DNA from: Phaeosaccion multiseriatum
Taxonomy: Eukaryota > Protista > Ochrophyta, other classes
Reading direction: 5' to 3'
Assembly (NCBI GenBank): GCA_965112735.1
Contig: OZ218956.1
Location: forward strand, 806,001 to 870,000
DNA length: 64,000 nucleotides
Shown here one piece after another: positions 9,853-64,000 of the stretch. The notes beneath the pieces were generated by a model, which saw nothing but the letters and a program-made list of their open reading frames with translations, was not told where the DNA came from and did not search any database. The translations under genes were made by a program, and so were the position numbers. The first letter of the stretch is position 1; every line of letters starts with the position of its first letter.

Positions 9853-9905
9853 AAGATTGAGAACAAGCTGGAGCGAGCAAAAAGGTCGCATTCTCGCCCT
9901 GCGAA

Positions 9906-11244
9906 CGCTGCCTCCGCAGCGAAGCCACGGAAGTTCTGTTCCACAGGTATTGAGAGCCGAGGAGGAGGGGTGGAGCGTGAACGCGTGTGTGGACCCCGAG
10001 GGTGAAAGTATGATAGAATATGTATGTGGCAGCAGATGGAAAACAGCGGCTCTGCTGCTCGAGCTCAGAAGAGGAGGAGCCCTGCTGTACTAGCTACCCT
10101 ACCGTGACTGAAGGAGACTGAGAGCAGGTACGGGTGTGTATAAGCATGCAGGGAGGAGAGTAGGGACCAATATGGTGTAGGAAAGTAAGGATCGCAGTAG
10201 CTAGGGCCCGACTGCTTCTCGATCTTGTGAAGGTGCTGTCCTACTAGTGTCATGCTAACTGTCGCAAACACAAGAGGTGCCCCCAATGCTAACTGTTGCA
10301 AGGGCTTGCGCTACGCACACGCATCTAGTAGAAGTTTGAGACCCTTGGACGCGGACTTGCTAACAAGATTGTGCTCACGTCCGCTGCTTCAGCAGCGGAG
10401 CCAGTGAGTGGAGGACAGACGAAGACTACATTTTCACTCATCACGATGTTGCCTTCGCAGATGGAGCGAGTCGGAGCTACACGGGGCAAGAGGCGCTTGC
10501 CGCGATGGAGGAGGGAGTGGAGCTGTGCCGCGTCACTCTCGTCTTCACTGGTATAGCAAGACTGACACACTTTCCGGAGAGGAAAAGTGCGGACGCATGA
10601 GCAGACGGGTGTCGCCTGCTTGTGTCCAGTGGAGGCTGCCCTGGAGGCTGTGCGCTGCCATTACCGACGAATGGAGCAGGAGCGGGAGGCGGCCTTCTTT
10701 CCTCCTATGTGGCGAGTCGGGGAGGAGGAATAAGTGCATCACCTCCCACCAAATCAGCAAGGCACTGCATGAAGGGGGGAGTTCACAGATTGATAGAGAC
10801 CCAGCACGCATCTCGTCCCACTCACTGAGGAGCGGCGGGGCTACGGCGTTGGCAGCAAGCGGCGCTGACTGCGGCTCCTCCAGTTTTGGGGCAGGTGGGC
10901 TTCGGCCACGGCCTTTCGTCGTACGCGCACCGCACGGTGCGTGGAGGAGGCTCGGGGCTGGGCAGGGCGCATGCTGCATATGCCGACACGGCTGCGCCCT
11001 GAGGACTTTCGGTGAATGGGGGATGAGCGGTTCCTCTGAACCGCTGCCCCCAAAGGCCCGTGCTCGCCCCTGTCAGGGGAGCGACACGCCGGAGACACTG
11101 TGTGCCCCGAGGTGAGTCCCTCTCAGGACTGCACTCCTCATGAAAGGTTTATCCCCCAGCATTGGCGACGACTGGATGAGGAGGAGCGAGGTCTCTCAAT
11201 GGGTACCCAGTTTGGATGGAGCGCAACGACTGCAGTGCGAGAAC
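9906..11244 (+). mobile_element. Degenerate, internally deleted family-1 YR retrotransposon (A repeat, second A start at ~10382 fused to the YR 3' half, B repeat 11018-11244)
   Basis: Diverged homology to 13161-13620 (A), to 18418-19635 (YR) and to 58171-58391 (B). Confidence 0.85.
10403..11002 (+). pseudogene. Frameshifted tyrosine recombinase fragment
   Basis: Encodes SKTD and RISSHSLRSGGATALAASGA, with indels relative to 18418-19635. It lacks the MITE, so it shows the empty site tgtgccgcgtca|ctctcgtc. Confidence 0.85.
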
Positions 11245-11450
11245 AGCCAGCCAAGCCGCAGATTGGGCCTTCTGCGCCCATGCTAGTATGCCTCGCTTGG
11301 CGCTGCTGTTATTGCAACGTAGTGTACACCAACGTTGGGTGTGAGTCTACCGTATCAGGCCATGGCCATTGCACTGCCCGGCGCGGTGTCATTGTGTTGG
11401 CCAGCAAACGCCTCAGTCGGGTCGTTCGTGGCCCGTTTTGGGCCTGTTAA
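11245..11450 (-). repeat. Highly diverged, inverted monomer of the 187-bp satellite
   Basis: agattgggcc..cttggcgctg..gtagt..tgcccgg..tggccagcaaacgc..gtcggg is colinear with the reverse complement of the satellite monomer. Confidence 0.7.
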
Positions 11451-11465
11451 GCCCAGCCGCGCCTC

Positions 11466-11810
11466 GCGAGCACCGGCCTTATTGGGGGCAGCAGTTCAGA
11501 GGAACCGCTCCCCCCCCTCCTTAGTACTAAATACTAAATAAGCTATATAATCTAGATGGGTGGGTGGGTGGAGAAAGAAAAAGCTTAGGCTACATTGTAG
11601 ACGTGACCACACCAATCTTACTAGCACGTCAGGCCAAGGCTCTCAAAACCTTGCTAGACGCGGGTGCGTAGCGCAAGCCCTTGCAATAGTAACCGCTAGC
11701 ATTGAAGGCACCTCGTATTGTGTTTGCAACCGTTCGCATTACACAAGTTAAGTGTGTATTAGCTTTCCTTTATCTATTTCTCACTTTCCTATCTATCCTC
11801 CTCCTGCGAC
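11466..11810 (-). mobile_element. Inverted degenerate fragment of a family-1 element right end (A 3' part, CCAC/TTTAG spacer, start of B)
   Basis: The reverse complement matches the A-spacer-B junction at 61420-61700 (gcaagggcttgcgctacgcac; ccacccacccacccatctagatta; gagcggttcctctgaac). Confidence 0.8.
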
Positions 11811-11884
11811 ATGCCGTTCATATGAGGCGTACGTTCCCCAACTGGCGGCAATCCGGATTCGAATATGCCAAGCACCTTTGAGAC

Positions 11885-13160
11885 TCAACAAAAGCCCAGC
11901 CGGCATTAATGGGACACACACAGCCCGACCGACGCGTTTGCTGGCCATAACATGCCCACGCCGTGCATTGGCTCAGCACAACAGGCCCAACTGAGATACT
12001 ACATTGCCACAACAGCGCCAAGTGGGGCCTTGGATGGGCTCAAATGGCCCAATCTGGCTCTGTGCTGGGATCAGAAAAGCCCAAAGCCCGAACAACGCGT
12101 TTGCTGGCCACAACATGCCCACGCCGGGCATTGGCTCAGCACAACAGGCCCAACTGAGATACTACATTGCCACAACAGCGCCAAGTGGGATGGGCTCAAA
12201 TGGCCCAATCTGGCTCTGTGCTGGGATCAAGACAGCCCAAAGCCCGCATTTGTGGGGCACACGCAGCCCGAACGACGCGTTTGCTGGCCACAACATGCCC
12301 ACTCCGGGCATTGGCTCAGCACAACAGGCCCAACTGGGATACTACATTGCCACAACAGCGCCAAGTGGGGCCTTGGATGGGCTCCAATGGCCCAATCTGG
12401 CTCTGTGCTGGGATCAAAAAAGCCCAAAGCCCGCATTTGTGGGCCACACACAGCCCGAACAACGCGTTTGCTGGCCACAACATGCCCACGCCGGGCATTG
12501 GCTCAGCACAACAGGCCCAACTGAGATACTACATTGCCACAACAGCGCCAAGTGGGGCCTTGGATGGGCTCAAATGGCCCAATCTGGCTCTGTGCTGGGA
12601 TCGAAAAAGCCCAAAGTCCGCATTTGTGGGGCACACACAGCCCGATCAACGCGTTTGCTGGCCACAACATGCCCACGCCGGGCATTAGCTCAGCACAACA
12701 GGCCCAACTGAGATACTACATTGCCACAACAGCGCCAAGTGGGGCCTTGGATGGGCTCAAATGGCCCAATCTGGCTCTGTGCTGGGATCAAAAAAGCCCA
12801 TAGCCCGCATTTGTGGGGCACACACAGCCCGAACGACGCGTTTGCTGGCCGCAACATGCCCACGCCGGGCATTGGCTCCGCACAACAGGCCCAACTGAGA
12901 TACTACATTGCCACAACAGCGCCAAGTGGGGCCTTGGATGGGCTCAAATGGCCCAGGGCACACACAGCCCGAACGACGCGTTTGCTGGCCACAACATGCC
13001 CACGCCGGGCATTGGCTCAGCACAACAGGCCCAACTGAGATACTACATTGCCACAACAGCGCCAAGTGGGGCCTTGGATGGACTCAATTGGCCCAATCTG
13101 GCTCTGTGCTGGGATCAGAAAAGCCCAAAGCCCGAGCAACGCGTTTGCTGGCCACAACAT
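11885..13160. repeat. 187/163-bp satellite, ~7 monomers, array edge (more diverged, with deletions)
   Basis: Tandem copies of ...gcgtttgctggccacaacatgccc...gccaagtggggccttggatgggctcaaatggcccaatctggctctgtgctgggatc... Confidence 0.95.
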
Positions 13161-13671
13161 CGCTGCTTCAGCAGCGGAGCCACGGAAGTTCTGTTCTCGC
13201 AGAGTGGAGTCGACGGAGAAACAGGGTATTGAGAGCCGAGGGGTAGGGTATGGAGCGTGGGCGCGTGTGTGGACCCCGAGGGGGGTTTAGGATAGAAATA
13301 TATATGGCAGCAGATGGAAAAGCAGTGTTCTCTGCTGCTCGAGCTCAGAAGAGGAGGAGCCCTGCTGCACTCGCCACCCTACCGTGATTGAAGGAGATCG
13401 AGAGCAGGTACGCGGGGGTGTGGGCAAGCAGGGAGGAGAGTAGAGACGGTGGTGTAGGAAAGCAAGGATCGCAGTAGGGCCCGACTGCTTCTCTTGTGAG
13501 GGTGAAGATGCTGTGTGCTTACTTGTGTCATGCTAACAGTTGCAAACACAAGATGTGCCCCCAATGCTAACAGTTGCAAGGGCTTGCGCTACGCACACGC
13601 ATCTAGTAGAAGTTAGAGACCCTTAGCCTGGTGTGGTATGGAGCTCTCACCGGGCAAAAGGTTTTTTCTTT
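13161..13671 (+). repeat. Split direct repeat A (family 1)
   Basis: Homologous to 55717-56241, 58392-58916, 61067-61591 and 9906-10350. Begins with the hairpin cgctgc-ttca-gcagcg. Confidence 0.9.
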
Positions 13672-13917
13672 CTTCTCTCGCCGGTGACGGGGCTTCCACG
13701 CTCCCTCGTCGCCCTTTCCTCTCCATCCGTGTCGCGGGGTTCTTCCACCCTAATCTCTCCGCCTCCTCCCTTCCCCACCGCGTGTGGTCCTTTTCCTGCG
13801 GCGTGGTGTTCCTTCCCGCCCAAATCCTCTGCCGCAGCCGCCGCACCAACCGCCCCACCGCAGCCGTCCTGCCTGCGCCCTCAGCACCTGTTGTCCATCG
13901 CCCCGGAGCAGCTCAGC

Positions 13918-15726
13918 ATGTCTGTCTATGGCTCCTCGGCGGATCTCCGCCTCACCTTCGACGATTCCTTCTCGGACAAAGCTTTTGTGGTTATTAAGGA
14001 GGCTGACAACGAGCTCGACTTCATGGCCGGCACTCTCTCTATGGGGGGCACCTCGTCACAGCCCACCTACACCCTGCGCTACCTGGACGACTCTGACAAC
14101 CTGACTTTCGATGAGTGGACCTCGCTACTCGCCAAGGGGGCCAAATTTCGACGGACCCCTACCCTCAAAGTCCGCTCTCGCCCCACCACTCCGCTAGAGG
14201 AAGGGGTCCTCTGGCACCTTATCTCCGACGCTACCCTCGAGCAGCTCGCACCCGGGGGGCCTGCCCAACTGGATCCCGCAGCCCGCCACCTTGGGGCCCT
14301 TTTTGACCCCATGGAGCGCGAGGCGGCAGCTGCCGAGCTTGTGGAGGAGGAGAGGCCCGCTACAGACGCGGAGGGGGTGGAGGAGGTTGCCGCTGGAGGG
14401 GGTGATACTTCCCCGGGGGACGCGGAGGTGGATGCCGAGGATGGCGAGGAGGAGGGGAAGGAACACGAGGCCGAGCCGGCCGCAGACGCGGCCATGGTGG
14501 TGGCTCCTGTCTCTGCGACGACGCCCCAAGCCCCTGTGACGCAGGAGCTCCGCGATTTGGAGCTCGCCGCCCACCGCATGGAGTTGGAGGAGCGCATGGC
14601 TGCCGTTCGCGACCGCCAGCGTCATCGGGAGTTGGCGTCCCAACTCGACCTCGACAAGCTCGCCCAAGCCCGTGCCCTCTCCGCCAAGGAATCTGCGGTC
14701 GCCCTCAGTCGCGCTTCCCGTGACGCCGAGGCCCTTGCCCTCTCGGAGGCGACCTGCACTGAATCCAAAGGTAAAGAAATTCCCACTGCTGCCCTCCTGC
14801 TCAACAGAGGCACCGCCAGCCCGGTCATCAAGAGGGGTGCTGCGGGGATGAAGGAAGTCGCCCAACGCTTCCACATCACCGCCTCCACTGCCCTCGACCC
14901 CATCTCCTTGCTGGGGCTTCGCTCGGGCTGTCTCGGCCTCGTCGACGACTTCCAACTGGAATGCGTGGCCCCCGTCGCGGCCGCAGTGGCCAACAAGGCC
15001 AGCACTACCCTCGACATGACGGAGCTGAAGCAGCGTAGTGCGGAAGGGGGGGGGGCCGTCACCCCCCTCCCGAAGGTGCAGCGCCGACCACCGACCACCC
15101 TCCATGCCCTCCACCTCACCCTTACGAATTTTGTGGCCCTCTTCCACATGGTGTTCCCCGCCAACTCGGACATCTTCACCGACTTCACCACCCTCGTGGC
15201 CCTGCTAGCGGAGGTGGTGCCTCGCCACGAGCCCCTGTTTCTCGGCATGACGCCGTCCATCACCATCACGGTTCTCAACAAGTCGCTGGCGCTGCACACC
15301 GCCGAGTGCGCCCGCTGGATCGGCCGCCAACCCCTGCCGGTGCGCGACTTCTCCACCGCCCCCGTCTTCTCGCTGGACTCCATGCTCACTGCGGGGGCCT
15401 CGCCGTCGGCGGCGATGCTGCACATGGAAGGCATGGTGGCCACTGCGGTGGCCGCCGCTCTGCACACCTTTCCTGCCGTTCGAGGAGGGGGAGGGGGCCT
15501 CACTGCGAGCCGGGGAATCTGCCTCGGCCTCCTGAAGACGCGCACCTGCACCACCCCCGACTGCCCCTTTGCCCCCTGCACTCCCAGCACCCTCACCTTC
15601 CCGCAGAAACGCCAAGCCCTCACTGCCCTCAAGACTCTCGGCACCCAGCCCTCCCCCGTTGACTGCGCTCACGCGCTGTCCATGGCCCAGCAGTTGGACC
15701 TCACGGGCGTGCCCTGGTGGCAATGA
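13918..15726 (+). CDS. ORF1, gag-like protein (602 aa from the first ATG) with an acidic/coiled-coil N-half and a C-terminal Cys cluster
   Basis: First ATG at 13918 in a long open frame, positioned upstream of RT. The motif ICLGLLKTRTCTTPDCPFAPC resembles the CCCH-type fingers of YR-element ORF1s. Confidence 0.8.
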   Translation: MSVYGSSADLRLTFDDSFSDKAFVVIKEADNELDFMAGTLSMGGTSSQPTYTLRYLDDSDNLTFDEWTSLLAKGAKFRRTPTLKVRSRPTTPLEEGVLWHLISDATLEQLAPGGPAQLDPAARHLGALFDPMEREAAAAELVEEERPATDAEGVEEVAAGGGDTSPGDAEVDAEDGEEEGKEHEAEPAADAAMVVAPVSATTPQAPVTQELRDLELAAHRMELEERMAAVRDRQRHRELASQLDLDKLAQARALSAKESAVALSRASRDAEALALSEATCTESKGKEIPTAALLLNRGTASPVIKRGAAGMKEVAQRFHITASTALDPISLLGLRSGCLGLVDDFQLECVAPVAAAVANKASTTLDMTELKQRSAEGGGAVTPLPKVQRRPPTTLHALHLTLTNFVALFHMVFPANSDIFTDFTTLVALLAEVVPRHEPLFLGMTPSITITVLNKSLALHTAECARWIGRQPLPVRDFSTAPVFSLDSMLTAGASPSAAMLHMEGMVATAVAAALHTFPAVRGGGGGLTASRGICLGLLKTRTCTTPDCPFAPCTPSTLTFPQKRQALTALKTLGTQPSPVDCAHALSMAQQLDLTGVPWWQ

Positions 15727-18045
15727 GGGCGCCCTGGCGCCGACGGACCCTCGACGGTGCCATCAGGGAGCGATAAGGAGGGCCCTCCACCCGCGGAGGG
15801 CCGGCCGCCACGGCGGCCCCCTGAAGGGGCCCTGTACCGCAGGTCGGCCGACCCAGCCTGGGTGGAGCAGACTTTCCTGAGTGCGTCAGCGTTGGGCAGC
15901 AGGGCGAGGGGTGGGGGGGTGTGCTTTAGCTCCGCCGTGGTCAAACTCCACGACCAAGGCTTGGCGGCTTTCCACGGCGACTTGGGGGCCTACGTGGAGT
16001 GGCTCGGCCCTCCCTTCGCCCCCGACTACTTCCACACCGACCGCATTCGTGCTGTCTTCGCAGGAGTGCCGCTGTGGCCAGAGTTGGAGGAAATCACCAC
16101 CAAGGGGGCCACCGTACCTGGGGAGTTTTCTGCCGTCACTTCTCCGCAGCGCCTTGCCTACCGCAACCACGAGGGAGGGCGTGAACATGCCGTCGCCTTG
16201 GAGGCCATGGCGGCCGCCAGTGCCGCTGCCGGTCAAGTTTTGCTTGTGTCGCTCTCGGTGGCCTTGCAATATTTTTCCCAATTCAGGCACTCCTTCTTGA
16301 GCGCCATCCTCAAGCCGAACGGAAAGCTACGCCAGGTCCTCGACCCCTCCTGCTCCCTCCACGGCGAGCCCACTTCCAACAGCCAGACGGACAAGACGCG
16401 CCTCGTCGACATGAAGGGGCAGAACGCTTTGCTGGAGATTATCACGCACATCTACAACTTGAATGTCTCCCTCGCCCCCGCAGCGTGGGATATTTTGATC
16501 TCCAAGACCGACGTCTCTGCTGCCTTCAACTGGGTCTACTACTCCCGCAGTGGCGCGCTCTGGCCCTTCTTCTGCTCCATCATTGGCTCAGTCGTCATCT
16601 TCGATCTTCGCTGCGCCTTCGGCCCCTGCTCCTCTCCTGCCTTCTACTTCGTGCTGGCCCAGAGCATCGTTGCCGTCATCCTTGCTACTCCACTCGCGGC
16701 GGAGATTGTCATCCCCTCGTGCTGCAATGGCCGCATCCCCGGCCTCGAGCTTGTACAAGTGGAGGAGCAGAAATGCCAACGGCGGAAAATGCGAGGTGCT
16801 CCGACGGCGGCGGTTTCGGCAGCTCAACAATCGGCGGCTTGCCACGGAGACGACACTATCGCTGTCTGGGCGGTCCCTCGGGACGTCCCCGCCCTCCAGC
16901 GCTGCGCAGGGGCCTTGCGGCTGAGTGCCCTCATACTTTCTACGCACTATAACCTCTTCAGCTGGCCGGGGGAGCACCCTCATGTCCCCTCCTGCATCAA
17001 CCTCGAGAAGCACGGCGTAGAGGGGAGCTGGCTCTCCTGCCAGCGGGTCTTGGGCATCATGATTGACACTGTGCGGGGGACTGCTTCGCTCCGCCCCGAT
17101 AAGCTGGAGGAGCTGCAGATTCTTTTGGCTGAGTGGGGGCCAGAGCGACATTTTGCCTCGCTGAAGGAGCTCCAGTCTGTCATCGGGAAACTCCGGAGCA
17201 TGAGCTACTGCGTAGGGCCCGGTCGCTACATGCTCCGCCAGCTCACCAACCTCACTCGACACTGCGGCTTCTCGCCCCACGCTCGCATCACGCTCTCCTC
17301 TCAAGCGCACTTCGACCTGCAGCGGTGGCGGGATCTTTTAGATTGGGGGGTGAAAGATCCCTCCGTCTTGGTCCGCCCTTTAGAATTGATGGTGAAGCGA
17401 GTCCCGGATATCGTATTGGATGGAGATGCAGCAGTGTGGGTGGACTCAGAGGGGGCTATCAGGGGGGGAGGCATTGTGTGGGAGGCAGCAGGACTTTTCG
17501 CGCAGTGGGAGTGGCCTCCCGAGGTACGGGCTGCTCACCAGGCGTCTCCACAGCTCATCTCCATCAACGACCTCGAGATGGCAGTGATTGTGGTGGGCAT
17601 CTGCACTTTTTGGCTGCACGACCCAGCCAGCTTCTGTCTCGCTGGCGTCTTGGTCAGAGGGGACAACACCAGCTCCCTCTCGTGGATTGAGCACCAGGGA
17701 GCGGCCAACAGTGACATTTCCAATGGTCTGGCAGGACTGGTGGGCCTTTTGGAGATCGGAGCGCAGTGCAGCCTCAACGTCGAGCACGTCGAAGGGGCGA
17801 AGAACATCATCCCCGACGGCCTCAGCCGCTACTCCCTCGATTATCTCATCGGTACTGACCACCTTTCTCCCATCTCTCCCATGTTTCAGCCGCTGACGGA
17901 GTGGCAACAGCTGGAGCCCAACTCAACGATTATGGACGCCGTTTTCGCAACCTTGCGTGGGGAGCCGCAGCGAGCGGTCTCAGGCCTGCAACCGTTCGTC
18001 GCTACGCGACGGTCCAGCGTCAGTGGACTGACTTCTGCGGTCTAG
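15727..18045 (+). CDS. Reverse transcriptase / RNase H (DIRS type), in frame with ORF1 after a single TGA
   Basis: RT motifs: LKPNGKLRQVLDPS, SKTDVSAAF, LRCAFGPCSSPAFY, CHGDD, RVLGIMID. RNase H motifs: LDGDAA..GGGIV, INDLEM, RGDNTSSLSW, HVEGAKNIIPDGLSR. Confidence 0.92.
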   Translation, partial: GRPGADGPSTVPSGSDKEGPPPAEGRPPRRPPEGALYRRSADPAWVEQTFLSASALGSRARGGGVCFSSAVVKLHDQGLAAFHGDLGAYVEWLGPPFAPDYFHTDRIRAVFAGVPLWPELEEITTKGATVPGEFSAVTSPQRLAYRNHEGGREHAVALEAMAAASAAAGQVLLVSLSVALQYFSQFRHSFLSAILKPNGKLRQVLDPSCSLHGEPTSNSQTDKTRLVDMKGQNALLEIITHIYNLNVSLAPAAWDILISKTDVSAAFNWVYYSRSGALWPFFCSIIGSVVIFDLRCAFGPCSSPAFYFVLAQSIVAVILATPLAAEIVIPSCCNGRIPGLELVQVEEQKCQRRKMRGAPTAAVSAAQQSAACHGDDTIAVWAVPRDVPALQRCAGALRLSALILSTHYNLFSWPGEHPHVPSCINLEKHGVEGSWLSCQRVLGIMIDTVRGTASLRPDKLEELQILLAEWGPERHFASLKELQSVIGKLRSMSYCVGPGRYMLRQLTNLTRHCGFSPHARITLSSQAHFDLQRWRDLLDWGVKDPSVLVRPLELMVKRVPDIVLDGDAAVWVDSEGAIRGGGIVWEAAGLFAQWEWPPEVRAAHQASPQLISINDLEMAVIVVGICTFWLHDPASFCLAGVLVRGDNTSSLSWIEHQGAANSDISNGLAGLVGLLEIGAQCSLNVEHVEGAKNIIPDGLSRYSLDYLIGTDHLSPISPMFQPLTEWQQLEPNSTIMDAVFATLRGEPQRAVSGLQPFVATRRSSVSGLTSAV

Positions 18046-19635
18046 CAGGCGTTCCCGTGTTACTGTTTGGAGATGACGACCCTCGCAATGCGGAGGTATT
18101 CATGGCGTTCATAGCGTGGTGCCGAGAGGAGAGGGGCAACGGTGCGGCCACTCTGAGGGGCAAGGGCCCAGGGGTGAATGACCTCTTCTCGCGGGAGGGG
18201 CTCAAGGGGCCTGCAGTCGGGAGGCAGGTCCACCTGCTCCTTCGGAGCTACAGGCTGGAGGACGGAGACAGCGTACAGCAGCTGCCAGTAGACGTGGACA
18301 TTCTTCGCAGCACCAGACGGGAGCTGCGAGGGGAGGGGGAGAGAGGGCACATGTTAGGGGCCCTCATCCTCCTGGGGTGGTTCTTTCTCATGCGAGTGAG
18401 CGAGTTCGCCCCGAACAGTGTGAGTGGAGGGACAGATGAAGACTACATTCTCACTCATCACGATGTTACCTTCGCAGATAGAGCGAGCCGGAGCTACACT
18501 GGACAAGAGGCGCTTGCCGCGATCGAGGAAGGAGTGGAGCTGTGCCGCGTCATGTTAGAAGTCGTGCTTTTGCTAGACTGGTACCTACCCTCTGAATTCA
18601 GACCGGGAGGTACCAGTCTAGCAAAAGCACGACTTCTAACAAGCCCTAGGGCTTGTTAGAAGTCGAACCCCCCCCCCCCCACCGCACATAGTGGAGAGAA
18701 GTAACTCGCAGTCTGGGAATCAGACTAATGGGTGCCAGCCGGTACCAATTTTCGCCGAAAAACACACTTTTTTCACAAGCTACAGCCAGGATTCGAACTC
18801 GCAATGGCCTTGTTAGAAGTCGTGCTTTTGCTAGACTGGTACCTACCCTCTGAATATATATAATAAATATTCAGAGGGTAGGTACCAGTCTAGCAAAAGC
18901 ACGACTTCTAACAAGGCCATTGCGAGTTCGAATCCTGGCTGTAGCTTGTGAAAAAAGTGTGTTTTTCGGCGAAAATTGGTACCGGCTGGCACCCATTAGT
19001 CTGATTCCCAGACTGCGAGTTACTTCTCTCCACTATGTGCGGTGGGGGGGGGGGGGTTCGACTTCTAGCATTAGGGCTTGTTAGAAGTCGTGCTTTTGCT
19101 AGACTGGTACCTCCCGGTCTGAATTCAGAGGGTAGGTACCAGTCTAGCAAAAGCACGACTTCTAACAGTCACTCTCGTCTTCACTGGTAGCAAGACGGAC
19201 ACCTTCAGGAGAGGAGAAGTGCGGACACACGAGCGGACGGGGGTCGTCGACTTGTGTCCAGTGGAGGCTGCCCTGGAGGCGGTGCGCTGCCACTACCGAC
19301 GAACGGAGCAGGAGCGGGAGGCAGCAGGGGGTAGTGCCCTCCTTTCCTCCTATGTGGAGGAGTCGGGGAGGAGGAAGTGCGTCACCTCCCACCAAGTCAG
19401 CAAGGCACTGAAGAGGGGAGCTCAGCAGATTGGTAGGGATCCAGCACGCATCTCATCCCACTCCTTGCGGAGCGGTGGGGCTACGGCATTGGCGGCAAGC
19501 GGCGCTGACTGGCGACTCCTGCAGTTCTGGGGCAGGTGGGCGTCGGCGACAGCCTTTCAGTACGCGCACCGTACGGTGGAGGAGGCTCTTGGCTGGGCAG
19601 GGCGCATGCTGCATGCAGACACGGCAGCGCCCTGA
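17890..19635 (+). pseudogene. Tyrosine recombinase, interrupted by a 615-bp insertion and otherwise intact
   Basis: N-terminal SAM-like region (ATVRRY..W..FC) and catalytic residues R (FLMRVSEF), K (GSKTD), HxxR (HSLRSGGAT), W (WGRW) and Y (AFQY). Removing 18553-19171 restores one open frame to TGA 19635. Confidence 0.9.
18553..19167. mobile_element. 615-bp foldback MITE with TGT...ACA termini and a 4-bp TSD (GTCA)
   Basis: GTCA occurs at 18549-18552 and 19168-19171, and the empty site is visible at ~10525-10540. The whole element is an almost perfect inverted repeat centred at ~18860. Confidence 0.9.
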
Positions 19636-19782
19636 GGACTTTGGGTGAATGGGGGATGAGCGGTTCCTCTGAACCGCTGCCCCCAAAGGCCCGTGCTCGC
19701 CCCCGTCAGGGGAGCGACACCCCAGGGACACTGTGTGCCTCGAGGTGAGTCCTTCTTAGGACTGCACTCTTCATGAAAAGTA

Positions 19783-20065
19783 ACGCCGGGCATTGGCTCA
19801 GCACAACAGGCCCAACTGAGATACTACATTGCCACAACAGCGCCAAGTGGGGCCTTGGATGGACTCAATTGGCCCAATCTGGCTCTGTGCTGGGATCAGA
19901 AAAGCCCAAAGCCCGAGCAACGCGTTTGCTGGCCACAACATGCCCACACCGGGCATTGGCTCAGCACAACAGGCCCAACTGAGATACTACATTGCCAACA
20001 CAGCGCCAAATGGGGCCTTGGATGGGCTCAAATGGCCCAATCTGGCTCTGTGCTGGGATCAAAAA
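19783..20065. repeat. Satellite, ~1.7 monomers between two elements
   Basis: Same monomer as the main array. Confidence 0.95.
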
Positions 20066-21430
20066 AAGCCTGTTCAGCAGCGCAGCAACGGAACTTTGTT
20101 TCTCGCGGAACAGAGACGAGGAAGAGGTGGGAGACCTGGGAGCCAGCAGGGCGAAGCGTCAGCGTAGGTGCTTGGTACCGCCCCAAGGGGGGGGGTCCCC
20201 TCTGGGGAGATGTACAGTATGTCAGTGAAGCAGGGAATTTAGATTTTTCAGAAGAGGAGAGACCTTGGCGTGTGCTGTCACTTACTGAGGCGGCGGAGAC
20301 AGAGCCCAGGAAGAGTGGAGCACACTGTCAAGGAGGAGAGTAGATACTGGTGTGGTGGAAAGCGAGCCTCTTGTCCTGGGCCCGGACAGAGCGCTTGTGT
20401 CGGCCAAGGGGACCCGCCTGGTGTTGAGTACCGGGGTCCTCGTGGGCGAGGGAAGGAGAGATAGGGAGACTGTGTCTGGTGTTGAGTGCCGACAGTGTCC
20501 ACGGTGTTGAGTGCCGGAACTCTTCTTTTCTTTCCCTTTGCCGGTGTTGTGGGGCTCTACGGCTTAGGAACGGTGTCTGGTGTTGAGTGCCGACCGCCTC
20601 CCCGGTGTTGAGTGCCGGCGCCTTTTGCCCTCTTCGCCCTTTCTTCCTTGCTGGTATCGCCGTAGGATCCGCGTCCGGTGTTGAGGCCGACGCCCTACTC
20701 ATCTCTCCGCCCTCTCCTCTCTCCCGTGGCCCAAGGTTTGGGGGGTGTGGTCCACGGCATTTTTTGTCTTTTTACGAGACGAAAGGGGCTCCCGGGTGAC
20801 GGCAGGCCCCTTAGCTCTTCCAGGTGTTTGTCTGTATGTTTGTGTGTGTATGTCCAGACGGTGTTTCTGTGTGTAGGGTGCGTATTTCCTGTGTTTGGCG
20901 TGCGAATATGCGCCTCCTCCGCAAAGGAGGCTGGCTCTGCGCGCGGTGACAACAGCGGCTCATCCCTCGCCATTCCGGCCCTCAACGGCGGGCGGGGCAG
21001 TCCTAGGCAACAGCAGCCGTGGTCACTGCCCCTACACACGATGTGTGTTTGTATCTGTGTGTGCTGGTCTGCGTCTGTGTGTGCTAGTGTGCGTTTGTGG
21101 GTGCTGGTGTCCCTGTATTGTGCCTTTGTCTATATCTGTGTGCCTGTGAATGTTTGTGTACGTCTGCGTGTTTAAGTGTACCTCCCTTGTTGTTGGAGTG
21201 TCTCCCCCCTACAACAGCAGTATGGCCAGAAGGAGGCGTGCTGGTCGCCACTGAGCTTGCCTGCAGTCTCTCTGGATGGGTGGGGGCGTAGCTGACCTTC
21301 GATACGGGAGCTCGCACGGCTCACCTCCGGCAGCTACATCCGAGAGACATATCGGGCCGAGGAGCGGCGAAGGGAAGGAGACGGACTACAGCTGTACCTC
21401 CCTCACCATCTCGAACGCATGGGAGGGGGT

Positions 21431-23007
21431 GTTGGAAGGCCCCGGGATAGGCATTGGGGATGTTGGAAGGCCTCAGATGAGATGGGCCATAAGTCAATGG
21501 CCCAGGCCCAGGCAGATACAGTGAGAACGGGTGGCGTGGCTCTCACTATCCTATGTGCGAAGGTGGTCGTTTAGGACTAGCATGCGATAAGTTAATAGAG
21601 GCAAGGCTGGCTGCTAGGCTGGCTTTGGGGTTGCTGTTACCTTGTCCGTGTGTCTAGTTCTATCCTATCTGTAGGCGACAGCGCATGTCGGTCGTGCGTA
21701 CGTCGTTTTACAACCCCAAAGGCCCGAAAGCAGCACTTAGCCAAGAGGCTTAGGCAGGGAAGGACGAGGCGTGTTAGGGGAGCACCGTGCGGCACATAAG
21801 CAGTGCCGTACGACGTGCGACAGCAGCGACAGCAGTGGAGCTGTTGTTGCACGGAGAGGCGGGAGTGGAGAGAGAATTGCCGGGAGTGGTGTCTACAGCG
21901 GGCACAGCTTTCGAGTGTGGCAGCAGCACGGATGTTGTTGTTGCACGGAAATGGATGCTGAAGGTTGGTGGGCAGTGGAGAGAGAAAATTGCCGGGAGTG
22001 GTGTCTACAGCGGGCACAGCTTTCGAGTGTGGCAGCAGCACGGATGTTGTTGTTGCACGGAAATGGATGCTGAAGGTTGGTGGGCAGTGGAGAGAGAGAG
22101 ATTTGCCGGGAGCGGTGTCTTACAGCGGGCACGGCTTTCGAGTGTGGCAGCAGCACGGATGTTGTTGTTGCACGGAAATGGATGCTGGAGGTTGGTGGGC
22201 AGTGGAGACAGAGAATTGCCGAGAGCGGTGCCTACAGCGGGCACGGCTTTCGAGTGTGGTAGCAGCACGGATGTTGTTGTTGCACGGAGCTTGGTGGGAG
22301 ACAGAGAAGGATACTCGCAAGGCTGCTTTAGGGACTGTCTGGGTGCCTTGTAGGCACACCAGTAAACACTTTAGCAGTCAGCATTAGTGGTGCGCAACGA
22401 GGCTTTGGCAACGCTGGTGGCGAGTAGGAGTGGAGAAAGATATGGCGCGGGTGAGTTTGAGTTGTGGGATGTTCTCATCCGTGAGCCTGTGTGGGTGAGT
22501 TTGAGTCGTGGGACTTTCTCATCAATACAGGGGGTGTGTGTGGGAGGAGCGGTCGCACACATCTGGGTGAGTATTGCATAATGCTCATCCGTTTTCTTTT
22601 TTTGGAAGCAGCATGGAGGCTTGTGCGACAGTCGAGCTTCAGTAGGCGAATCCGCTTGTGTTGCGTGGGGACACGCAACAGTCTTGTCAAGGGGATGTTG
22701 GAAGTGGCGGATAGCTATTGGGGATGTTGGAAGGCCCCGGGATAGGCATTGGGGATGTTGGAAGGCCTCAGATGAGATGGGCCATAAGTCAATGGCCCAG
22801 GCCCAGGCAGATACAGTGAGAACGGGTGGCGTGGCTCTCACTATCCTATGTGCGAAGGTGGTCGTTTAGGACTAGCATGCGATAAGTTAATAGAGGCAAG
22901 GCTGGCTGCTAGGCTGGCTTTGGGGTTGCTGTTACCTTGTCCGTGTGTCTAGTTCTATCCTATCTGTAGGCGACAGCGCATGTCGGTCGTGCGTACGTCG
23001 TTTTACA
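21431..23007 (+). repeat. 282-bp direct repeat (21431-21712 and 22726-23007) flanking ~1 kb
   Basis: The sequence gttggaaggccccggg...cgtcgttttaca is repeated at offset 1295. Confidence 0.9.
21860..22290. repeat. ~112-115-bp minisatellite, ~4 copies
   Basis: Tandem copies of ...ctacagcgggcacagctttcgagtgtggcagcagcacggatgttgttgttgcacgga... Confidence 0.9.
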
Positions 23008-55716: not shown

Positions 55717-58700
55717 CGCTGCTTCAGCAGCGAAGCCACGGAAGTTCTGTTCTCGCAGAGTGGAGTCGACGGAGAAACAGGGTATTGAGAGCCGAGGAGG
55801 GGGGAGCGTGAGCGCGTGTGCGTGGACCCCGAGGGAGCTGGTAGGATAGAAAGTATATTTATGGCAGCAGATGGAAAACAGCGGATTTGGATTTTCTGCT
55901 GGAGCTCAGAAGAGGAGGAGCCCTGCTGTACTCGCCACGCTACCGTGATTGGAGGAGATCGAGAGCAGGTGCGGGAGCGTGTACAAGCAGGGAGGAGAGT
56001 AGAGACTGATGGTGTAGGAAAGCAAGGATCGCAGTAGGGCCCGACTGCTTCTCTTGTGAGGGTGAAGATGCTGTGTGCTTACTTGTGTCATGCTACCTGT
56101 CGCAAACACATGAGGTGCCCCCAATGCTAACTGTCGCAAGGGCTTGCGCTACGCACACGCATCTAGTAGAAGTTTGAGAGCCTGGGCTTGATTACGTGTG
56201 TGAAGATGGTCCTCACGTCTAGCCCAAGGTTTTTTCTTTTCTCTCGCCGGTGACGGGGCTTCCACGCTCCCTCGTCGCCCTTTCCTCTCCATTGGTTTCG
56301 CGGGGTCCGTCAACCCCAATCTTTTCGCCTCCTCCCTTCTCCACCCCGCCTGGTTGTGGCGTCGCTGCGGCGGTGGCGGGATCTTTTAGGCTGGGGGGTG
56401 AAAGATCCTTCCGCTTTGGTCCTGATGGTGATGAGCGCCCCGCGTATCGTATGGGACGCAGATGCAGCAGATGAGAGCCCGGCGTATCGTGTTGGATGGA
56501 GATGCAGCAGTGCGGATGGCCTTAGAGGGGGCTTTCAGGGGGGGAGGCATCGTGTTGGAAGCAGCAGCGCGCAGGGGGGGGAGGAGCCATCCGGTACTCG
56601 CTACCCTACCGGGATTGAACAGGATTGAGAGCTGGAGCCTGACTTCATGGTAGACACCTTCTCGATCTACGGGAGGAAGGGTTGGTGGACTTTTCTCTTC
56701 TTTCGAGCGCCACAATAACAGCAACGCGAGTAGCAGCAGCAGCTACGAGTGATCCCGTCCGGCCTGTCGCTTCAGCCGGAGAGTACGGGCGCATGGACAG
56801 TGGGTGTAGTGGCAGTTAGTGCTAGGGTGACGAACGGACAGCTGGGAGGTGGCATTGTTTTCCTCTTCCTCGCCCCTGGAGACGTTTTGCGTAGATGTGG
56901 GAGAAGGGCGGCAGCAGAAAGGAGTGAATAGGGACTCTCAGCCAAGCAGCAAGAGCCTCAGCAGCCACGGCGAGGGCGGAGTTCGTGAGTGTGACAGCCG
57001 CGGTCGCATGGATGCGGAGGCAGGTATTCGGGCTATTGGAAGGAGCCGGTGGGCTCTGCTTTGGTGGTGGTTGGCGCCTTGAGTAGGTGGCGTGTGCAGC
57101 GGCTGTTCTACCTGTGGCCATAACAGAGAAGCGACGTACAACAGAAGGGGCGCAGCGAGCAAGGAAGGCATGGGTCGGTGGGAGACGGCAGTGAGTGTTT
57201 GCAGCGCTTGCCTCCCTGACGACACAGCAGCATCTATAGAGTGGCCATCTACGTATTGTGGGGACAGGGCACTACGCTTGGGGGGGTTGCGGAGAGTGGG
57301 CAATCGAGCCATGTAGCTACTTATCTGCAATGGGCGGCGGCGGAGTGGCATTTGGTCATCCACAACAGCTGTGGAGTGAGGGTTGGGGCCTGCCTGTGCT
57401 GCGATAGTCGGATAAGGGATTTTTCGGGGTGCGTGACACTTGAACGGTGCGAACGAAGAAAATGGGCGAGAGCAGGCAATAGGTTTTGCTATGCTTGCGC
57501 GACTTACTTGGGGTGGTAAGGATGGCATATCCTCGTGCCAGAGTGCCCGGTGGTCGATGCTTTGGGGCAGCAGGGCTTGAGATCTTGGGCTTGTTCGTTT
57601 GCAGGTCGACAGCAGCGAGGTGTTTTGCACTCGGTCTTTTGTCGGCCGGGTACTGCGGAAGTCCGCAGCGGACGGTTGGAATAGCAGTGACGGGGTATCG
57701 GCACGGTGTATGCAGAAGGGCCGCGTCTACGAATTGGTGTTCTAGGAGCTTGGTGCGAAAAACATAAGTGCGGCTGTTGGGGCATTTTCTGTTTTTCTAC
57801 CGGGGTTGGTTCTATGGGATTTTTGGATCTGTGATTCCGAAAAGAATTTCAATTTGGCTAATTGAGCGACCTTGGACCTGCGGCGATGGCGGAGAGCGCC
57901 GACTATCGTAGTCGGAGGACTCCGCGCGGCTATAGCGGTGATGGAGGAGGGAGTAGAGCTGCGCCGCTTCTCTCTCACTTTTACTGATGGCTCTGAAGGT
58001 GGGGACACAACAGATTGGTAGCGACATAGCGGCGACGACTGGTGGCTTCTCCAGTCCAAGGTGGGCCTGGGCCACAGCATTTCAGCACGCGTGCAGGACG
58101 CCATGCGCTGGGCAGGGCGCAGTAGGATACATGCAGACACGGCTGCGCCCAAGGGACTTTGGGTGAATATGGGGGATGAGCGGCTCCTCGGAACCGCTGC
58201 CCCCAAAGGCCCGTGCTCGCCCCCGTCAGGGAAGCGACACCCCGGAGACACTGTGTGCCCCGAGGTGAGTCCCTCTCAGGACTGCACTCTTAATGAAAAG
58301 TTTATCCCCCAACATTGGCGACGACTGGATGAGGAGGAGCGAGGCCTCTCAATGGGTACCCAGTTTCGATTGAGCGCAACGACTGCGAGAACGCTGCTTC
58401 AGCAGCGAAGCCACGGAAGTTCTGTTCTCGCAGAGTGGAGTCGACGGAGAAACAGGGTATTGAGAGCCGAGGAGGGGGGAGCGTGAGCGCGTGTGCGTGG
58501 ACCCCGAGGGAGCTGGTAGGATAGAAAGTATATTTATGGCAGCAGATGGAAAACAGCGGATTTGGATTTTCTGCTGGAGCTCAGAAGAGGAGGAGCCCTG
58601 CTGTACTCGCCACGCTACCGTGATTGGAGGAGATCGAGAGCAGGTGCGGGAGCGTGTACAAGCAGGGAGGAGAGTAGAGACTGATGGTGTAGGAAAGCAA

Positions 58701-61700
58701 GGATCGCAGTAGGGCCCGACTGCTTCTCTTGTGAGGGTGAAGATGCTGTGTGCTTACTTGTGTCATGCTACCTGTCGCAAACACATGAGGTGCCCCCAAT
58801 GCTAACTGTCGCAAGGGCTTGCGCTACGCACACGCATCTAGTAGAAGTTTGAGAGCCTGGGCTTGATTACGTGTGTGAAGATGGTCCTCACGTCTAGCCC
58901 AAGGTTTTTTCTTTTCTCTCGCCGGTGACGGGGCTTCCACGCTCCCTCGTCGCCCTTTCCTCTCCATTGGTTTCGCGGGGTCCGTCAACCCCAATCTTTT
59001 CGCCTCCTCCCTTCTCCACCCCGCCTGGTTGTGGCGTCGCTGCGGCGGTGGCGGGATCTTTTAGGCTGGGGGGTGAAAGATCCTTCCGCTTTGGTCCTGA
59101 TGGTGATGAGCGCCCCGCGTATCGTATGGGACGCAGATGCAGCAGATGAGAGCCCGGCGTATCGTGTTGGATGGAGATGCAGCAGTGCGGATGGCCTTAG
59201 AGGGGGCTTTCAGGGGGGGAGGCATCGTGTTGGAAGCAGCAGCGCGCAGGGGGGGGAGGAGCCATCCGGTACTCGCTACCCTACCGGGATTGAACAGGAT
59301 TGAGAGCTGGAGCCTGACTTCATGGTAGACACCTTCTCGATCTACGGGAGGAAGGGTTGGTGGACTTTTCTCTTCTTTCGAGCGCCACAATAACAGCAAC
59401 GCGAGTAGCAGCAGCAGCTACGAGTGATCCCGTCCGGCCTGTCGCTTCAGCCGGAGAGTACGGGCGCATGGACAGTGGGTGTAGTGGCAGTTAGTGCTAG
59501 GGTGACGAACGGACAGCTGGGAGGTGGCATTGTTTTCCTCTTCCTCGCCCCTGGAGACGTTTTGCGTAGATGTGGGAGAAGGGCGGCAGCAGAAAGGAGT
59601 GAATAGGGACTCTCAGCCAAGCAGCAAGAGCCTCAGCAGCCACGGCGAGGGCGGAGTTCGTGAGTGTGACAGCCGCGGTCGCATGGATGCGGAGGCAGGT
59701 ATTCGGGCTATTGGAAGGAGCCGGTGGGCTCTGCTTTGGTGGTGGTTGGCGCCTTGAGTAGGTGGCGTGTGCAGCGGCTGTTCTACCTGTGGCCATAACA
59801 GAGAAGCGACGTACAACAGAAGGGGCGCAGCGAGCAAGGAAGGCATGGGTCGGTGGGAGACGGCAGTGAGTGTTTGCAGCGCTTGCCTCCCTGACGACAC
59901 AGCAGCATCTATAGAGTGGCCATCTACGTATTGTGGGGACAGGGCACTACGCTTGGGGGGGTTGCGGAGAGTGGGCAATCGAGCCATGTAGCTACTTATC
60001 TGCAATGGGCGGCGGCGGAGTGGCATTTGGTCATCCACAACAGCTGTGGAGTGAGGGTTGGGGCCTGCCTGTGCTGCGATAGTCGGATAAGGGATTTTTC
60101 GGGGTGCGTGACACTTGAACGGTGCGAACGAAGAAAATGGGCGAGAGCAGGCAATAGGTTTTGCTATGCTTGCGCGACTTACTTGGGGTGGTAAGGATGG
60201 CATATCCTCGTGCCAGAGTGCCCGGTGGTCGATGCTTTGGGGCAGCAGGGCTTGAGATCTTGGGCTTGTTCGTTTGCAGGTCGACAGCAGCGAGGTGTTT
60301 TGCACTCGGTCTTTTGTCGGCCGGGTACTGCGGAAGTCCGCAGCGGACGGTTGGAATAGCAGTGACGGGGTATCGGCACGGTGTATGCAGAAGGGCCGCG
60401 TCTACGAATTGGTGTTCTAGGAGCTTGGTGCGAAAAACATAAGTGCGGCTGTTGGGGCATTTTCTGTTTTTCTACCGGGGTTGGTTCTATGGGATTTTTG
60501 GATCTGTGATTCCGAAAAGAATTTCAATTTGGCTAATTGAGCGACCTTGGACCTGCGGCGATGGCGGAGAGCGCCGACTATCGTAGTCGGAGGACTCCGC
60601 GCGGCTATAGCGGTGATGGAGGAGGGAGTAGAGCTGCGCCGCTTCTCTCTCACTTTTACTGATGGCTCTGAAGGTGGGGACACAACAGATTGGTAGCGAC
60701 ATAGCGGCGACGACTGGTGGCTTCTCCAGTCCAAGGTGGGCCTGGGCCACAGCATTTCAGCACGCGTGCAGGACGCCATGCGCTGGGCAGGGCGCAGTAG
60801 GATACATGCAGACACGGCTGCGCCCAAGGGACTTTGGGTGAATATGGGGGATGAGCGGCTCCTCGGAACCGCTGCCCCCAAAGGCCCGTGCTCGCCCCCG
60901 TCAGGGAAGCGACACCCCGGAGACACTGTGTGCCCCGAGGTGAGTCCCTCTCAGGACTGCACTCTTAATGAAAAGTTTATCCCCCAACATTGGCGACGAC
61001 TGGATGAGGAGGAGCGAGGCCTCTCAATGGGTACCCAGTTTCGATTGAGCGCAACGACTGCGAGAACGCTGCTTCAGCAGCGAAGCCACGGAAGTTCTGT
61101 TCTCGCAGAGTGGAGTCGACGGAGAAACAGGGTATTGAGAGCCGAGGAGGGGGGAGCGTGAGCGCGTGTGCGTGGACCCCGAGGGAGCTGGTAGGATAGA
61201 AAGTATATTTATGGCAGCAGATGGAAAACAGCGGATTTGGATTTTCTGCTGGAGCTCAGAAGAGGAGGAGCCCTGCTGTACTCGCCACGCTACCGTGATT
61301 GGAGGAGATCGAGAGCAGGTGCGGGAGCGTGTACAAGCAGGGAGGAGAGTAGAGACTGATGGTGTAGGAAAGCAAGGATCGCAGTAGGGCCCGACTGCTT
61401 CTCTTGTGAGGGTGAAGATGCTGTGTGCTTACTTGTGTCATGCTACCTGTCGCAAACACATGAGGTGCCCCCAATGCTAACTGTCGCAAGGGCTTGCGCT
61501 ACGCACACGCATCTAGTAGAAGTTTGAGAGCCTGGGCTTGATTACGTGTGTGAAGATGGTCCTCACGTCTAGCCCAAGGTTTTTTCTTTTCCACCCACCC
61601 ACCCATCTAGATTAGTTTTAGTACTTAGTAGTTAGATACTCAGTAGTTAAGGGGGGGATGAGCGGCTCCTCGGAACCGCTGCCCCCAAAGGCCCGTGCTC

Positions 61701-61873
61701 GCCCCCGTCAGGGAAGCGACACCCCGGAGACACTGTGTGCCCCGAGGTGAGTCCCTCTCAGGACTGCACTCTTAATGAAAAGTTTATCCCCCAACATTGG
61801 CGACGACTGGATGAGGAGGAGCGAGGCCTCTCAATGGGTACCCAGTTTCGATTGAGCGCAACGACTGCGAGAA
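55717..61873 (+). mobile_element. Non-autonomous family-1 derivative as a tandem dimer: A-int-B-A-int-B-A-spacer-B (period 2675 bp)
   Basis: A at 55717, 58392 and 61067; B at 58171, 60846 and 61653. The internal part retains scraps of the 5' leader, RNase H (RWRDLL.WGVKDPS, VLDGDAAV) and the YR tail (WAGR..HADTAAP). Confidence 0.92.
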
Positions 61874-64000
61874 CAATAAAGCCCAAAGCCCGCATTTGTG
61901 GGGCACACACAGCCCGACCGACGCGTTTGCTGGCCACAACATGCCCACTCCGGGCGTTGGCTCAGCACAACAGGCCCAACTGAGATACTACATTGCCACA
62001 ACAGCGCCAAGTGGGGCCTTGGATGGGCTCAAATGGCCCAATCTGGCTCTGTGCTGGGATCAAGAAAGCCCAAAGCCCGCATTTGTGGGGCACACACAGC
62101 CCGAACGACGCGTTTGCTGGCCACAACATGCCCACTCCGGGCATTGGCTCAGCACAACAGGCCTAACTGAGATACTACATTGCCACAACAGCGCCAAGTG
62201 GGGCCTTGGATGGGCTCAAATGGCCCAATCTGGCTCTGTGCTGGGATCAAAAAAGCCCAAAGCCCGAACAACGCGTTTGCTGGCCACAACATGCCCACTC
62301 CGGGCATTGGCTCAGCACAACAGGCCGAACTAAGATACTACATTGCCACAACAGCGCCAAGTGGGGCCTTGGATGGGCTCAAATGGCCCAATCTGGCTCT
62401 GTGCTGGGATCAAAAAAGCCCAAAGCCCGCATTTGTGGGGCACACAAAGCCCGACCGACGCGTTTGCTGGCCACAACATGCCCACTCCGGGCGTTGGCTC
62501 AGCACAACAGGCCCAACTGAGATACTACATTGCCACAACAGCGCCAAGTGGGGCCTTGGATGGACTCAAATGGCCCAATCTGGCTCTGTGCTGGGATCAA
62601 TAAAGCCCAAAGCCCGAACAACGCGTTTGCTGGCCACAACATGCCCACTCCGGGCATTGGCTCAGCACAACAGGCCCAACTGGGATACTACATTGCCACA
62701 ACAGCGCCAAGTGGGGCCTTGGATGGGCTCAAATGGCCCAATCTGGCTCTGTGCTGGGATCAAAAAAGCCCAAAGTCCGCATTTGTGGGGCACACACAGC
62801 CCGACCGACGCGTTTGCTGGCCACAACATGCCCACTCCGGGCGTTGGCTTAGCACAACAGGCCGAACTGAGATACTACATTGCCACAACAGCGCCAAGTG
62901 GGGCCTTGGATGGGCTCAAATGGCCCAATCTGGCTCTGTGCTGGGATCAATAAAGCCCAAAGTCCGCATTTGTGGGGCACACACAGCCCGACCGACGCGT
63001 TTGCTGGCCACAACATGCCCACTCCGGGCATTGGCTCAGCACAACAGGCCGAACTGAGATACTACGTTGCCACAACAGCGCCAAGTGGGGCCTTGGATGG
63101 GCTCAAATGGCCCAATCTGGCTCTGTGCTGGGATCAAGAAAGCCCAAAGCCCGCATTTGTGGGGCACACACAGCCCGAACGACGCGTTTGCTGGCCACAA
63201 CATGCCGACGCCGGGCATTGGCTCAGCACAACAGGCCTAACTGAGATACTACATTGCCACAACAGCGCCAAGTGGGGCCTTGGATGGGCTCAAATGGCCC
63301 AATCTGGCTCTGTGCTGGGATCAAAAAAGCCCAAAGCCCGAACAACGCGTTTGCTGGCCACAACATGCCCACTCCGGGCATTGGCTCAGCACAACAGGCC
63401 GAACTAAAATACTACATTGCCACAACAGCGCCAAGTGGGGCATTGGATGGGCTCAAATGGCCCAATCTGGCTCTGTGCTGGGATCAATAAAGCCCAAAGC
63501 CCGCATTTGTGGGGCACACAAAGCCCGACCGACGCGTTTGCTGGCCACAACATGCCCACTCCGGGCGTTGGCTCAGCACAACAGGCCCAACTGAGATACT
63601 ACATTGCCACAACAGCGCCAAGTGGGGCCTTGGATGGGCTCAAATGGCCCAATCTGGCTCTGTGCTGGGATCAAGAAAGCCCAAAGTCCGCATTTGTGGG
63701 GCACACACAGCCCGACCGACGCGTTTGCTGGCCACAACATGCCCACTCCGGGCATTGGCTTAGCACAACAGGCCGAACTGAGATACTACATTGCCACAAC
63801 AGCGCCAAGTGGGGCCTTGGATGGGCTCAAATGGCCCAATCTGGCTCTGTGCTGGGATCAATAAAGCCCAAAGCCCGCATTTGTGGGGCACACACAGCCC
63901 GACCGACGCGTTTGCTGGCCACAACATGCCCACTCCGGGCGTTGGCTCAGCACAACAGGCCCAACTGAGATACTACATTGCCACAACAGCGCCAAGTGGG
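61874..64000. repeat. Satellite array continuing beyond the window
   Basis: Same monomers, resuming in register with 55716. Confidence 0.98.

Follow-up and report, generated by a model that had tools for sequence, protein, structure and literature searches.

We examined a 64,000-bp stretch of contig OZ218956.1 of the ochrophyte Phaeosaccion multiseriatum (assembly GCA_965112735.1, positions 806,001 to 870,000 of the forward strand), hereafter the window, in which a tandem satellite is repeatedly interrupted by retrotransposons. Three related Ngaro-like families of tyrosine-recombinase (YR) retrotransposons lie within the 187-bp satellite; their junctions are clean and show no typical target-site duplication (TSD). 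Positions are counted from the first base of the window. We name its elements E13, E20 and E55 by their start positions, refer to a degenerate element beginning at 9906 as the old copy, and label metagenomic relatives L001 and onwards.

Satellite blocks and the elements between them

The satellite makes up ~49% of the window (31,093 of 64,000 bp). Its 187-bp monomer, numbered here so that GGGATC occupies phases 144-149, is accompanied by a 163-bp variant without 24 bp, and the main array at 34583-55717 holds 88 monomers of the longer and 23 of the shorter form. All blocks lie on the + strand (11891-13160, 19783-20070, 25763-27915, 28845-30996, 31926-33890, 34583-55717 and 61871-64000), and the gaps between them are transposon sequence. 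The 24 bp missing from the 163-bp form lie between short direct repeats, and in the main array this form often alternates with the 187-bp form to give a 350-bp period. The features are as follows, A and B denoting the split direct repeats of the elements and ORF an open reading frame.

9906-11244, + strand: old family-1-type copy, internally deleted (A start, YR remnant, complete B end)
11247-11456, - strand: inverted degenerate satellite monomer adjoining the B end of the old copy (nhmmer E=4.4e-10)
11466-11752, - strand: inverted old fragment with A end, linker and B start (75-77% identity to 61428-61702)
11891-13160, + strand: satellite block of 187/163-bp monomers, left of the autonomous copy
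13161-19782, + strand: E13, autonomous-type Ngaro-like copy (A, ORF1, reverse transcriptase (RT)/RNase H, YR, truncated B)
13633-15726, + strand: ORF1, 697 aa, at the Gag position, no family match
15757-18045, + strand: RT/RNase H ORF, 762 aa
17901-18552, + strand: N-terminal piece of the YR, with the box I arginine
18553-19167, no strand: foldback (palindromic) insertion of 615 bp interrupting the YR ORF, GTCA on both sides
19168-19635, + strand: C-terminal piece of the YR (Lys, HxxR, Trp, Tyr; Pfam PF00589)
19783-20070, + strand: satellite, 288 bp between E13 and E20, ending with the AAGCC core
20071-25762, + strand: E20, family-2 non-autonomous element (A1-internal-B1-AAAGCC-A2-linker-B2)
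20071-20536, 24411-24826, 24827-24832 and 24833-25298, + strand: A1, B1, core AAAGCC and A2 of E20
25299-25346 and 25347-25762, + strand: linker (48 bp) and B2 of E20
27916-28844, + strand: solo A-linker-B unit of family 2, duplicate 1 (99.9% identical to 24833-25762)
30997-31925, + strand: solo A-linker-B unit of family 2, duplicate 2
33891-34582, + strand: truncated solo unit of family 2, duplicate 3
34583-55717, + strand: main satellite array, its last base the shared C of GGGATC
55718-61874, + strand: E55, family-1 non-autonomous tandem of two 2675-bp units (A-internal-B), then A3-linker-B3
61068-61591, 61592-61652 and 61653-61874, + strand: A3, linker (61 bp) and B3 of E55
61875-64000, + strand: satellite resuming in phase (phase 150) right of E55

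The coding capacity resides in E13, where ORF1 at the Gag position is followed by the RT/RNase H ORF and then by the YR ORF, which overlaps the end of the RT ORF. Pfam returned no match for ten large ORFs including the RT ORF, which did not match RVT_1, and a word-indexed protein search with the 762-aa ORF found nothing. An exhaustive search with the same ORF returned 954 relatives, the best at 35% identity; those that were checked were all metagenomic, in clusters all named "hypothetical protein". When 21 relatives were aligned, the RT motifs and the acidic (DEDD) residues of RNase H could be recognized, with YVDD as the consensus and HGDD in the window copy, and a family profile of the ORF matched the RT of human immunodeficiency virus type 1 (HIV-1) at E=2e-5. 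An AlphaFold (AF2) model of the ORF (pLDDT 83, pTM 0.81) was confidently folded over residues 55-749, and its top 50 matches in the PDB were all RT-RNase H chains, down to E=2e-10, aligned over 520-730 columns and including those of foamy virus, cauliflower mosaic virus, HIV-1, Ty3 and Moloney murine leukaemia virus. Alignment and predicted fold together identify the 762-aa ORF as an RT/RNase H, one of the marks of the DIRS order of retrotransposons.

A second mark is a tyrosine recombinase encoded in place of a DDE integrase, and this is what the region after the RT ORF specifies. Its C-terminal piece matches the Pfam family PF00589 (Phage_integrase) at E=7.6e-8 and 32.8 bits (curated cut-off 27.1), and aligned with the post-RT ORFs of relatives the two pieces jointly hold the catalytic Arg, Lys, His-x-x-Arg, Trp and Tyr. 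Pfam scans of the element's ORFs returned no other domain, and no methyltransferase-like domain. E13 is disabled, both by the foldback insertion and by 3' truncation. The insertion is 97.6% self-complementary with internal sub-repeats, and the old copy has the corresponding uninterrupted site at ~10532; at its 3' end E13 is without the last 91 bp of B and, because of this truncation, without the entire A2-linker-B2.

Both non-autonomous families have the terminal architecture of E13. In E55 a 3199-bp stretch occurs again, 100% identical, 2675 bp further on, and the element keeps from an E13-like parent the A end, the ORF1 start, an RT piece and the B end. The old copy is 84-92% identical in DNA to the termini of E13 and E55 and retains a YR remnant, found by tblastn and with a weak match to Pfam PF00589; a longer B segment sought upstream of it was not significant. 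In E20 the A1 and A2 repeats are 99.6% identical and the B1 and B2 repeats 100%, and terminal motifs are held in common with family 1, while a search of E20 for RT or YR coding sequence found none. Also common to the two non-autonomous families is an internal segment of 0.85 kb, 73% identical between them (23092-23921 versus 57006-57847, and also 59681-60522); it is absent from the autonomous copy, has ORFs of 230 and 169 aa on its minus strand that match no family, and is possibly a captured sequence. Inside E20, moreover, a 112-bp sequence is repeated in tandem 3.7 times (21868-22288), flanked by a 288-bp direct repeat (21425-21712 and 22720-23007, 99.7% identity).

To the right of E20 the solo units (929 bp each, the truncated one 692 bp) recur together with their surroundings. 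The unit at 24833-27915 is 99.94% identical to the next over 3.08 kb, including 2153 bp of satellite, whereas neighbouring satellite blocks elsewhere agree at 96.9%; a single missing 187-bp monomer is all that sets the third satellite block apart from the second. What results is a 3082-bp higher-order repeat of one solo A-linker-B unit plus twelve monomers, present in 3.3 copies at 99.9-100% identity (24833-34582), so that a transposon remnant is now part of the satellite repeat unit. The three solo units are copies made by segmental tandem duplication of these 3082 bp; that they were independent insertions is rejected by the flanking satellite they share at 99.94%. The sequence-only reading spoke of independent elements, which holds for E55 and E20 as clean and separate events; the solo units do not count as further hits.

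Junctions at the level of single bases

To the best of our knowledge, few studies have followed the integration of eukaryotic YR retrotransposons down to the bases exchanged. For two families the window holds all four partner sequences (empty monomer, left junction, right junction and B|A junction); this confines the crossover to 1-6 bases and allows a conserved junction layout to be put forward. All junction strings quoted in the sequence-only reading were found where it had placed them.

For E55 the satellite reads TGGGAT-C up to 55717 and continues with GCTGC, the internal B|A junctions at 58392 and 61067 read GAGAA-C|GCTGC, and on the right GAGAA-C (61874) is followed by AATAAAGCCC. The left flank ends at phase 149 and after the shared C the satellite restarts at phase 150, so excision restores one in-phase monomer; since the same C closes every internal B|A junction, the insertion is an exact reciprocal exchange between B|A junction and satellite with a 1-nt overlap and no duplication, just as had been proposed from the letters. 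The shared core proposed for family 2 is likewise there: the left flank of E20 ends in AAGCC (20066-20070, phase 158), the right flank begins with AAGCC (25763-25767, phases 154-158) and the B1|A2 junction carries AAAGCC (24827-24832). Removal of E20 again leaves an intact in-phase monomer, and the solo units have the same junctions (flank ending at 158, starting at 154). The family-2 A-runs differ by one base in length (7 versus 6 A at the left junction, 3 versus 2 A in the core; 20056-20070, 24824-24832, 25760-25767 and 27901-27915), through slippage or homopolymer assembly error. Insertion without a TSD, with a short sequence common to element junction and target, is a further mark of the DIRS order.

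The remaining two elements are less regular. The autonomous copy does lie in the satellite at another phase, as had been claimed: its left junction at 13161 follows ACAACAT at phase 30, and the element begins exactly at the position seen in E55. The claim has to be qualified on the right, where the copy breaks off 91 bp before the B end and the satellite, picking up again at phase 35, has lost 4 bp of target (GCCC). A few bases downstream of this break lies the heptamer CATTGGC, which occurs both in the lost portion of B and in the flanking satellite (19740-19800 versus 58290-58330), by chance or tied to the origin of the truncation. The old copy was said to end at 11244 against an inverted monomer, and on that side its complete B end is indeed followed, after two extra bases, by a degenerate inverted monomer from about phase 145; its left flank is non-satellite, apart from an 8-nt string resembling the B end, and the two flanks do not pair up as halves of a single target.

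With their conserved flanks in register, the B|A junctions of families 1 and 2 read GAA, six bases, TTCAGCAGCG, and that of the metagenomic relative L001 reads GAA, six bases, TTCGAGCAGCG. In all three elements (3/3) the 6-nt spacer has the apparent crossover at its GAA side, or within a stretch that includes that side. GAA-N6-TTC(G)AGCAGCG may accordingly be a candidate core site of the recombinase, a proposal drawn from three elements. In this common frame the satellite registers of families 1 and 2 differ by 6 bp; the insertions therefore lie near one another and not at the same spot.

L001 has the split-direct-repeat layout of the window elements and three short features in common with them: TTC(G)AGCAGCG shortly after the beginning of A, a linker that opens with CCCACCCACC, and a run of G where B begins. 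In the linkers at 61592-61652 and 25299-25346, and at 12893-12919 of L001, CCCACCCACC follows the T-rich end of A and B opens with the G-run; the RT of L001 is only ~30% identical, yet linker motif and G-run are kept. These two motifs may be cis signs of the replication cycle, for example of priming or termination. The L001 family occurs at two different non-satellite sites, and L002-L006 have no usable flanks, being circularly permuted, end-overlapping or cut by a contig end. In L002 and L003 both ends of the locus overlap exactly (unit 7141 bp) and the two are circular permutations of each other, and L010 shows at 1-541 a B|A junction followed by the full internal region; these structures fit tandem arrays or circular molecules alike. 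L004 contains internal tandem repeats.

Integration, amplification and the question of targeting

We consider it probable that a satellite array was invaded by a divergent Ngaro-like YR lineage whose members integrated according to the DIRS-order model, amplified in place and hit the satellite mainly through its abundance. Under this model the circle junction recombines with the genome at a short sequence that both possess, leaving one copy on each side and no TSD (PMC3266345, PMC7192593), and the reading of the present integrations as an instance of it is well supported. A cDNA form carrying the B|A junction would have been recombined conservatively by the YR with a target that has little or no sequence in common with it, 1 nt in family 1 and 5-6 nt in family 2. 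Once inserted, the elements would have been multiplied on site by unequal exchange between their A or B repeats, giving rise to the family-1 tandem, the solo A-linker-B units and the 3082-bp higher-order repeat; the tandem and the solo units could alternatively have arisen by a further unit integrating at a regenerated junction.

Several points weigh against this reading. Neither a circle, nor a transcript, nor recombination activity is visible in sequence. The family-1 overlap is a single base, and classical YR reactions require an identical spacer of 6-8 bp. The GAA-N6-TTC layout was read from three elements, and E13 combines a canonical left end with a truncated right end and a 4-bp target loss, which points to a second, non-canonical step. 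Finally, assembly artefacts could in part account for the tandem units of 100% identity and for the duplicated blocks, and junction copies differ by one base in their A-runs (7/6 A on the left, 3/2 A in the core).

Since the solo units are segmental duplicates, few independent events are left from which to judge whether the satellite is targeted: E55 (phase 149), E20 (154-158) and E13 (30), with the old copy uncertain, near 147 and inverted. E55 and E20 share an orientation and are separated by 4-9 bp. For three random events in a 187-bp monomer, the probability that any two of them fall within 4-9 bp of each other is 0.12-0.27; if the old copy is counted, a triple lies within 8-12 bp (p 0.02-0.045), which is marginal. 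Among the 374 monomer positions (both strands) ranked by identity to the element junction, the family-1 site comes 136-220 and the family-2 site 8-23. The AAAGCC core of family 2 occurs twice per monomer, with 320 occurrences in the satellite against 16 in the rest of the window (10.3 versus 0.49 per kb, 21-fold denser), and its landing there is therefore explicable by mass action alone. Equally, this element-templated core, matching an abundant and harmless repeat, could be an adaptation. A search for more copies, with an A-terminus 26-mer and a satellite 24-mer beside the insertion site, gave zero hits in metagenome, viral and prokaryote-genome collections.

The sequence-only reading had independent elements striking the same spot of the monomer. 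The nearness of E55 and E20 stands, and identity of site does not, given the 6-bp difference in register and the position of E13 at phase 30. The long-standing satellite or centromere preference hypothesized there does not emerge from these figures: the clustering is not significant, the family-1 site ranks in the middle of the monomer and the abundance of AAAGCC suffices for family 2. One window cannot show that the families aim at the satellite; the satellite was presumably hit mainly through its abundance and, in family 2, through the AAAGCC core, dedicated recognition being possible.

Two accounts deserve weighing beside that of invasion with in-place amplification. Passive accumulation, which we judge somewhat unlikely, holds that random insertions survived and amplified in a gene-poor, recombination-poor array and that the near-coincidence of sites is chance. 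It draws on the satellite forming 49% of the window, on copies amplified in place by duplication, on every copy in the window being defective or non-autonomous and on the non-significant clustering, although an identity of 5-6 nt between the family-2 core and its target would be improbable at a random site, and the termini of E55 and E20 are complete to the base. True targeting, in our estimation also somewhat unlikely, would have the recombinases recognize a sequence or chromatin feature at phases ~145-160, with the satellite as a dedicated landing site in the way that the telomeric hexamer is one for TATE, a precedent described in PMC6681497. The proximity and common orientation of E55 and E20 speak in its favour, as do the B end of the old copy ~2 bp from the mirrored GAT|C position, the match of the family-2 junction to the consensus monomer over up to 7 nt and a junction core that, being templated by the element, is heritable and could be tuned to a target. 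The p of 0.12-0.27 for three firm events, the separate registers and phase 30 of E13 count against targeting, and so do a family-1 site unlike its own junction, an old copy that is inverted with non-satellite DNA on its other flank, and a structurally close relative (L001) that inserts outside satellites. Descent of the satellite from element sequence is extremely improbable and is rejected in spite of the internal tandem repeats of L004 and the 112-bp repeat of E20, since the monomer has no significant similarity to any element in the window and removal of E55 or E20 leaves an intact in-phase monomer.

Although decidedly unlikely, it is attractive to think that the recombinases act on a GAA-N6-TTC site by a single strand exchange at the GAA boundary, with no need for spacer identity, and that their junction core was tuned to a 15-bp satellite stretch, making them satellite-specific, possibly even centromere-specific, and seeding higher-order repeats. 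YR systems with single-strand exchange exist and provide a model for exchange without spacer identity.

Relation to known elements and neighbouring DNA

By their structure the window elements are DIRS-order YR retrotransposons of the Ngaro-like type, in agreement with the original assignment. Split direct repeats are present in E20, E55 and the relative L001, and the ORF order is Gag-like, RT/RNase H, YR, in keeping with the Ngaro layout A1-ORFs-B1A2B2 and its solo AB units (PMC8547959; layout and ORF order also in PMC6681497). The inverted terminal repeats and internal complementary region of DIRS1-like elements were not found by self-comparison of the window, which revealed direct split repeats only, the sole inverted repeat being the foldback. 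Nor is the VIPER-like order present, in which YR precedes RT/RNase H; the window YR follows it.

The Ngaro elements of Cafeteria burkhardae (PMC8547959) are the closest in architecture, sharing A1-ORFs-B1A2B2, the Gag-like/RT-RNase H/YR order with nothing extra after RNase H, and solo AB units, and a biased landing place has been reported for some of their types. However, that landing place is endogenous virophages, as opposed to the satellite here, and the RT of the window is very divergent (best relative 35%, metagenomic only). The Ngaro likeness is one of structure.

TATE of Leishmania braziliensis, a VIPER-like element, is the closest functional precedent. As cited in PMC6681497, it has split-direct-repeat termini and occurs in tandem clusters that occupy a single position of the Leishmania telomeric hexamer; according to the same source its YR ORF precedes RT/RNase H and its target is a 6-bp telomeric repeat. 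In contrast, the positions in our window are close and not identical, and the sample is very small. Should a preference of phase prove true genome-wide, the elements described here would join TATE as a second clear example of YR retroelements that are dedicated to tandem repeats.

DIRS-1 of Dictyostelium discoideum is likewise a YR retrotransposon clustered in repeat-rich DNA, namely that of the centromeres (PMC7192593), for which the circle-junction model without TSD has been put forward (PMC7192593, PMC3266345). Unlike the window elements it has inverted termini, an internal complementary region and a methyltransferase-like domain, and it mostly inserts into other DIRS-1 copies rather than into satellite. 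Retroelements that interrupt long satellite arrays include centrophilic LTR (long terminal repeat) retrotransposons and the YR elements counted in chordate centromere satellites (survey, bioRxiv 10.64898/2026.09.17.752431). The former use DDE integrases with chromodomains, the latter have only been counted, and nothing in our window marks the array as centromeric.

The left part of the window is of a different nature. Positions 1-9900 contain gene-like ORFs on the + strand that encode Glu/Lys/Arg-rich coiled-coil sequence in shifting frames (for example 3225-5303, 692 aa), and from their arrangement they look like a single large gene split by frameshifts or short introns. A single distant metagenomic homologue (JGI) is the only one that was found for them, and they end ~2 kb ahead of the start of the satellite array at 11891.

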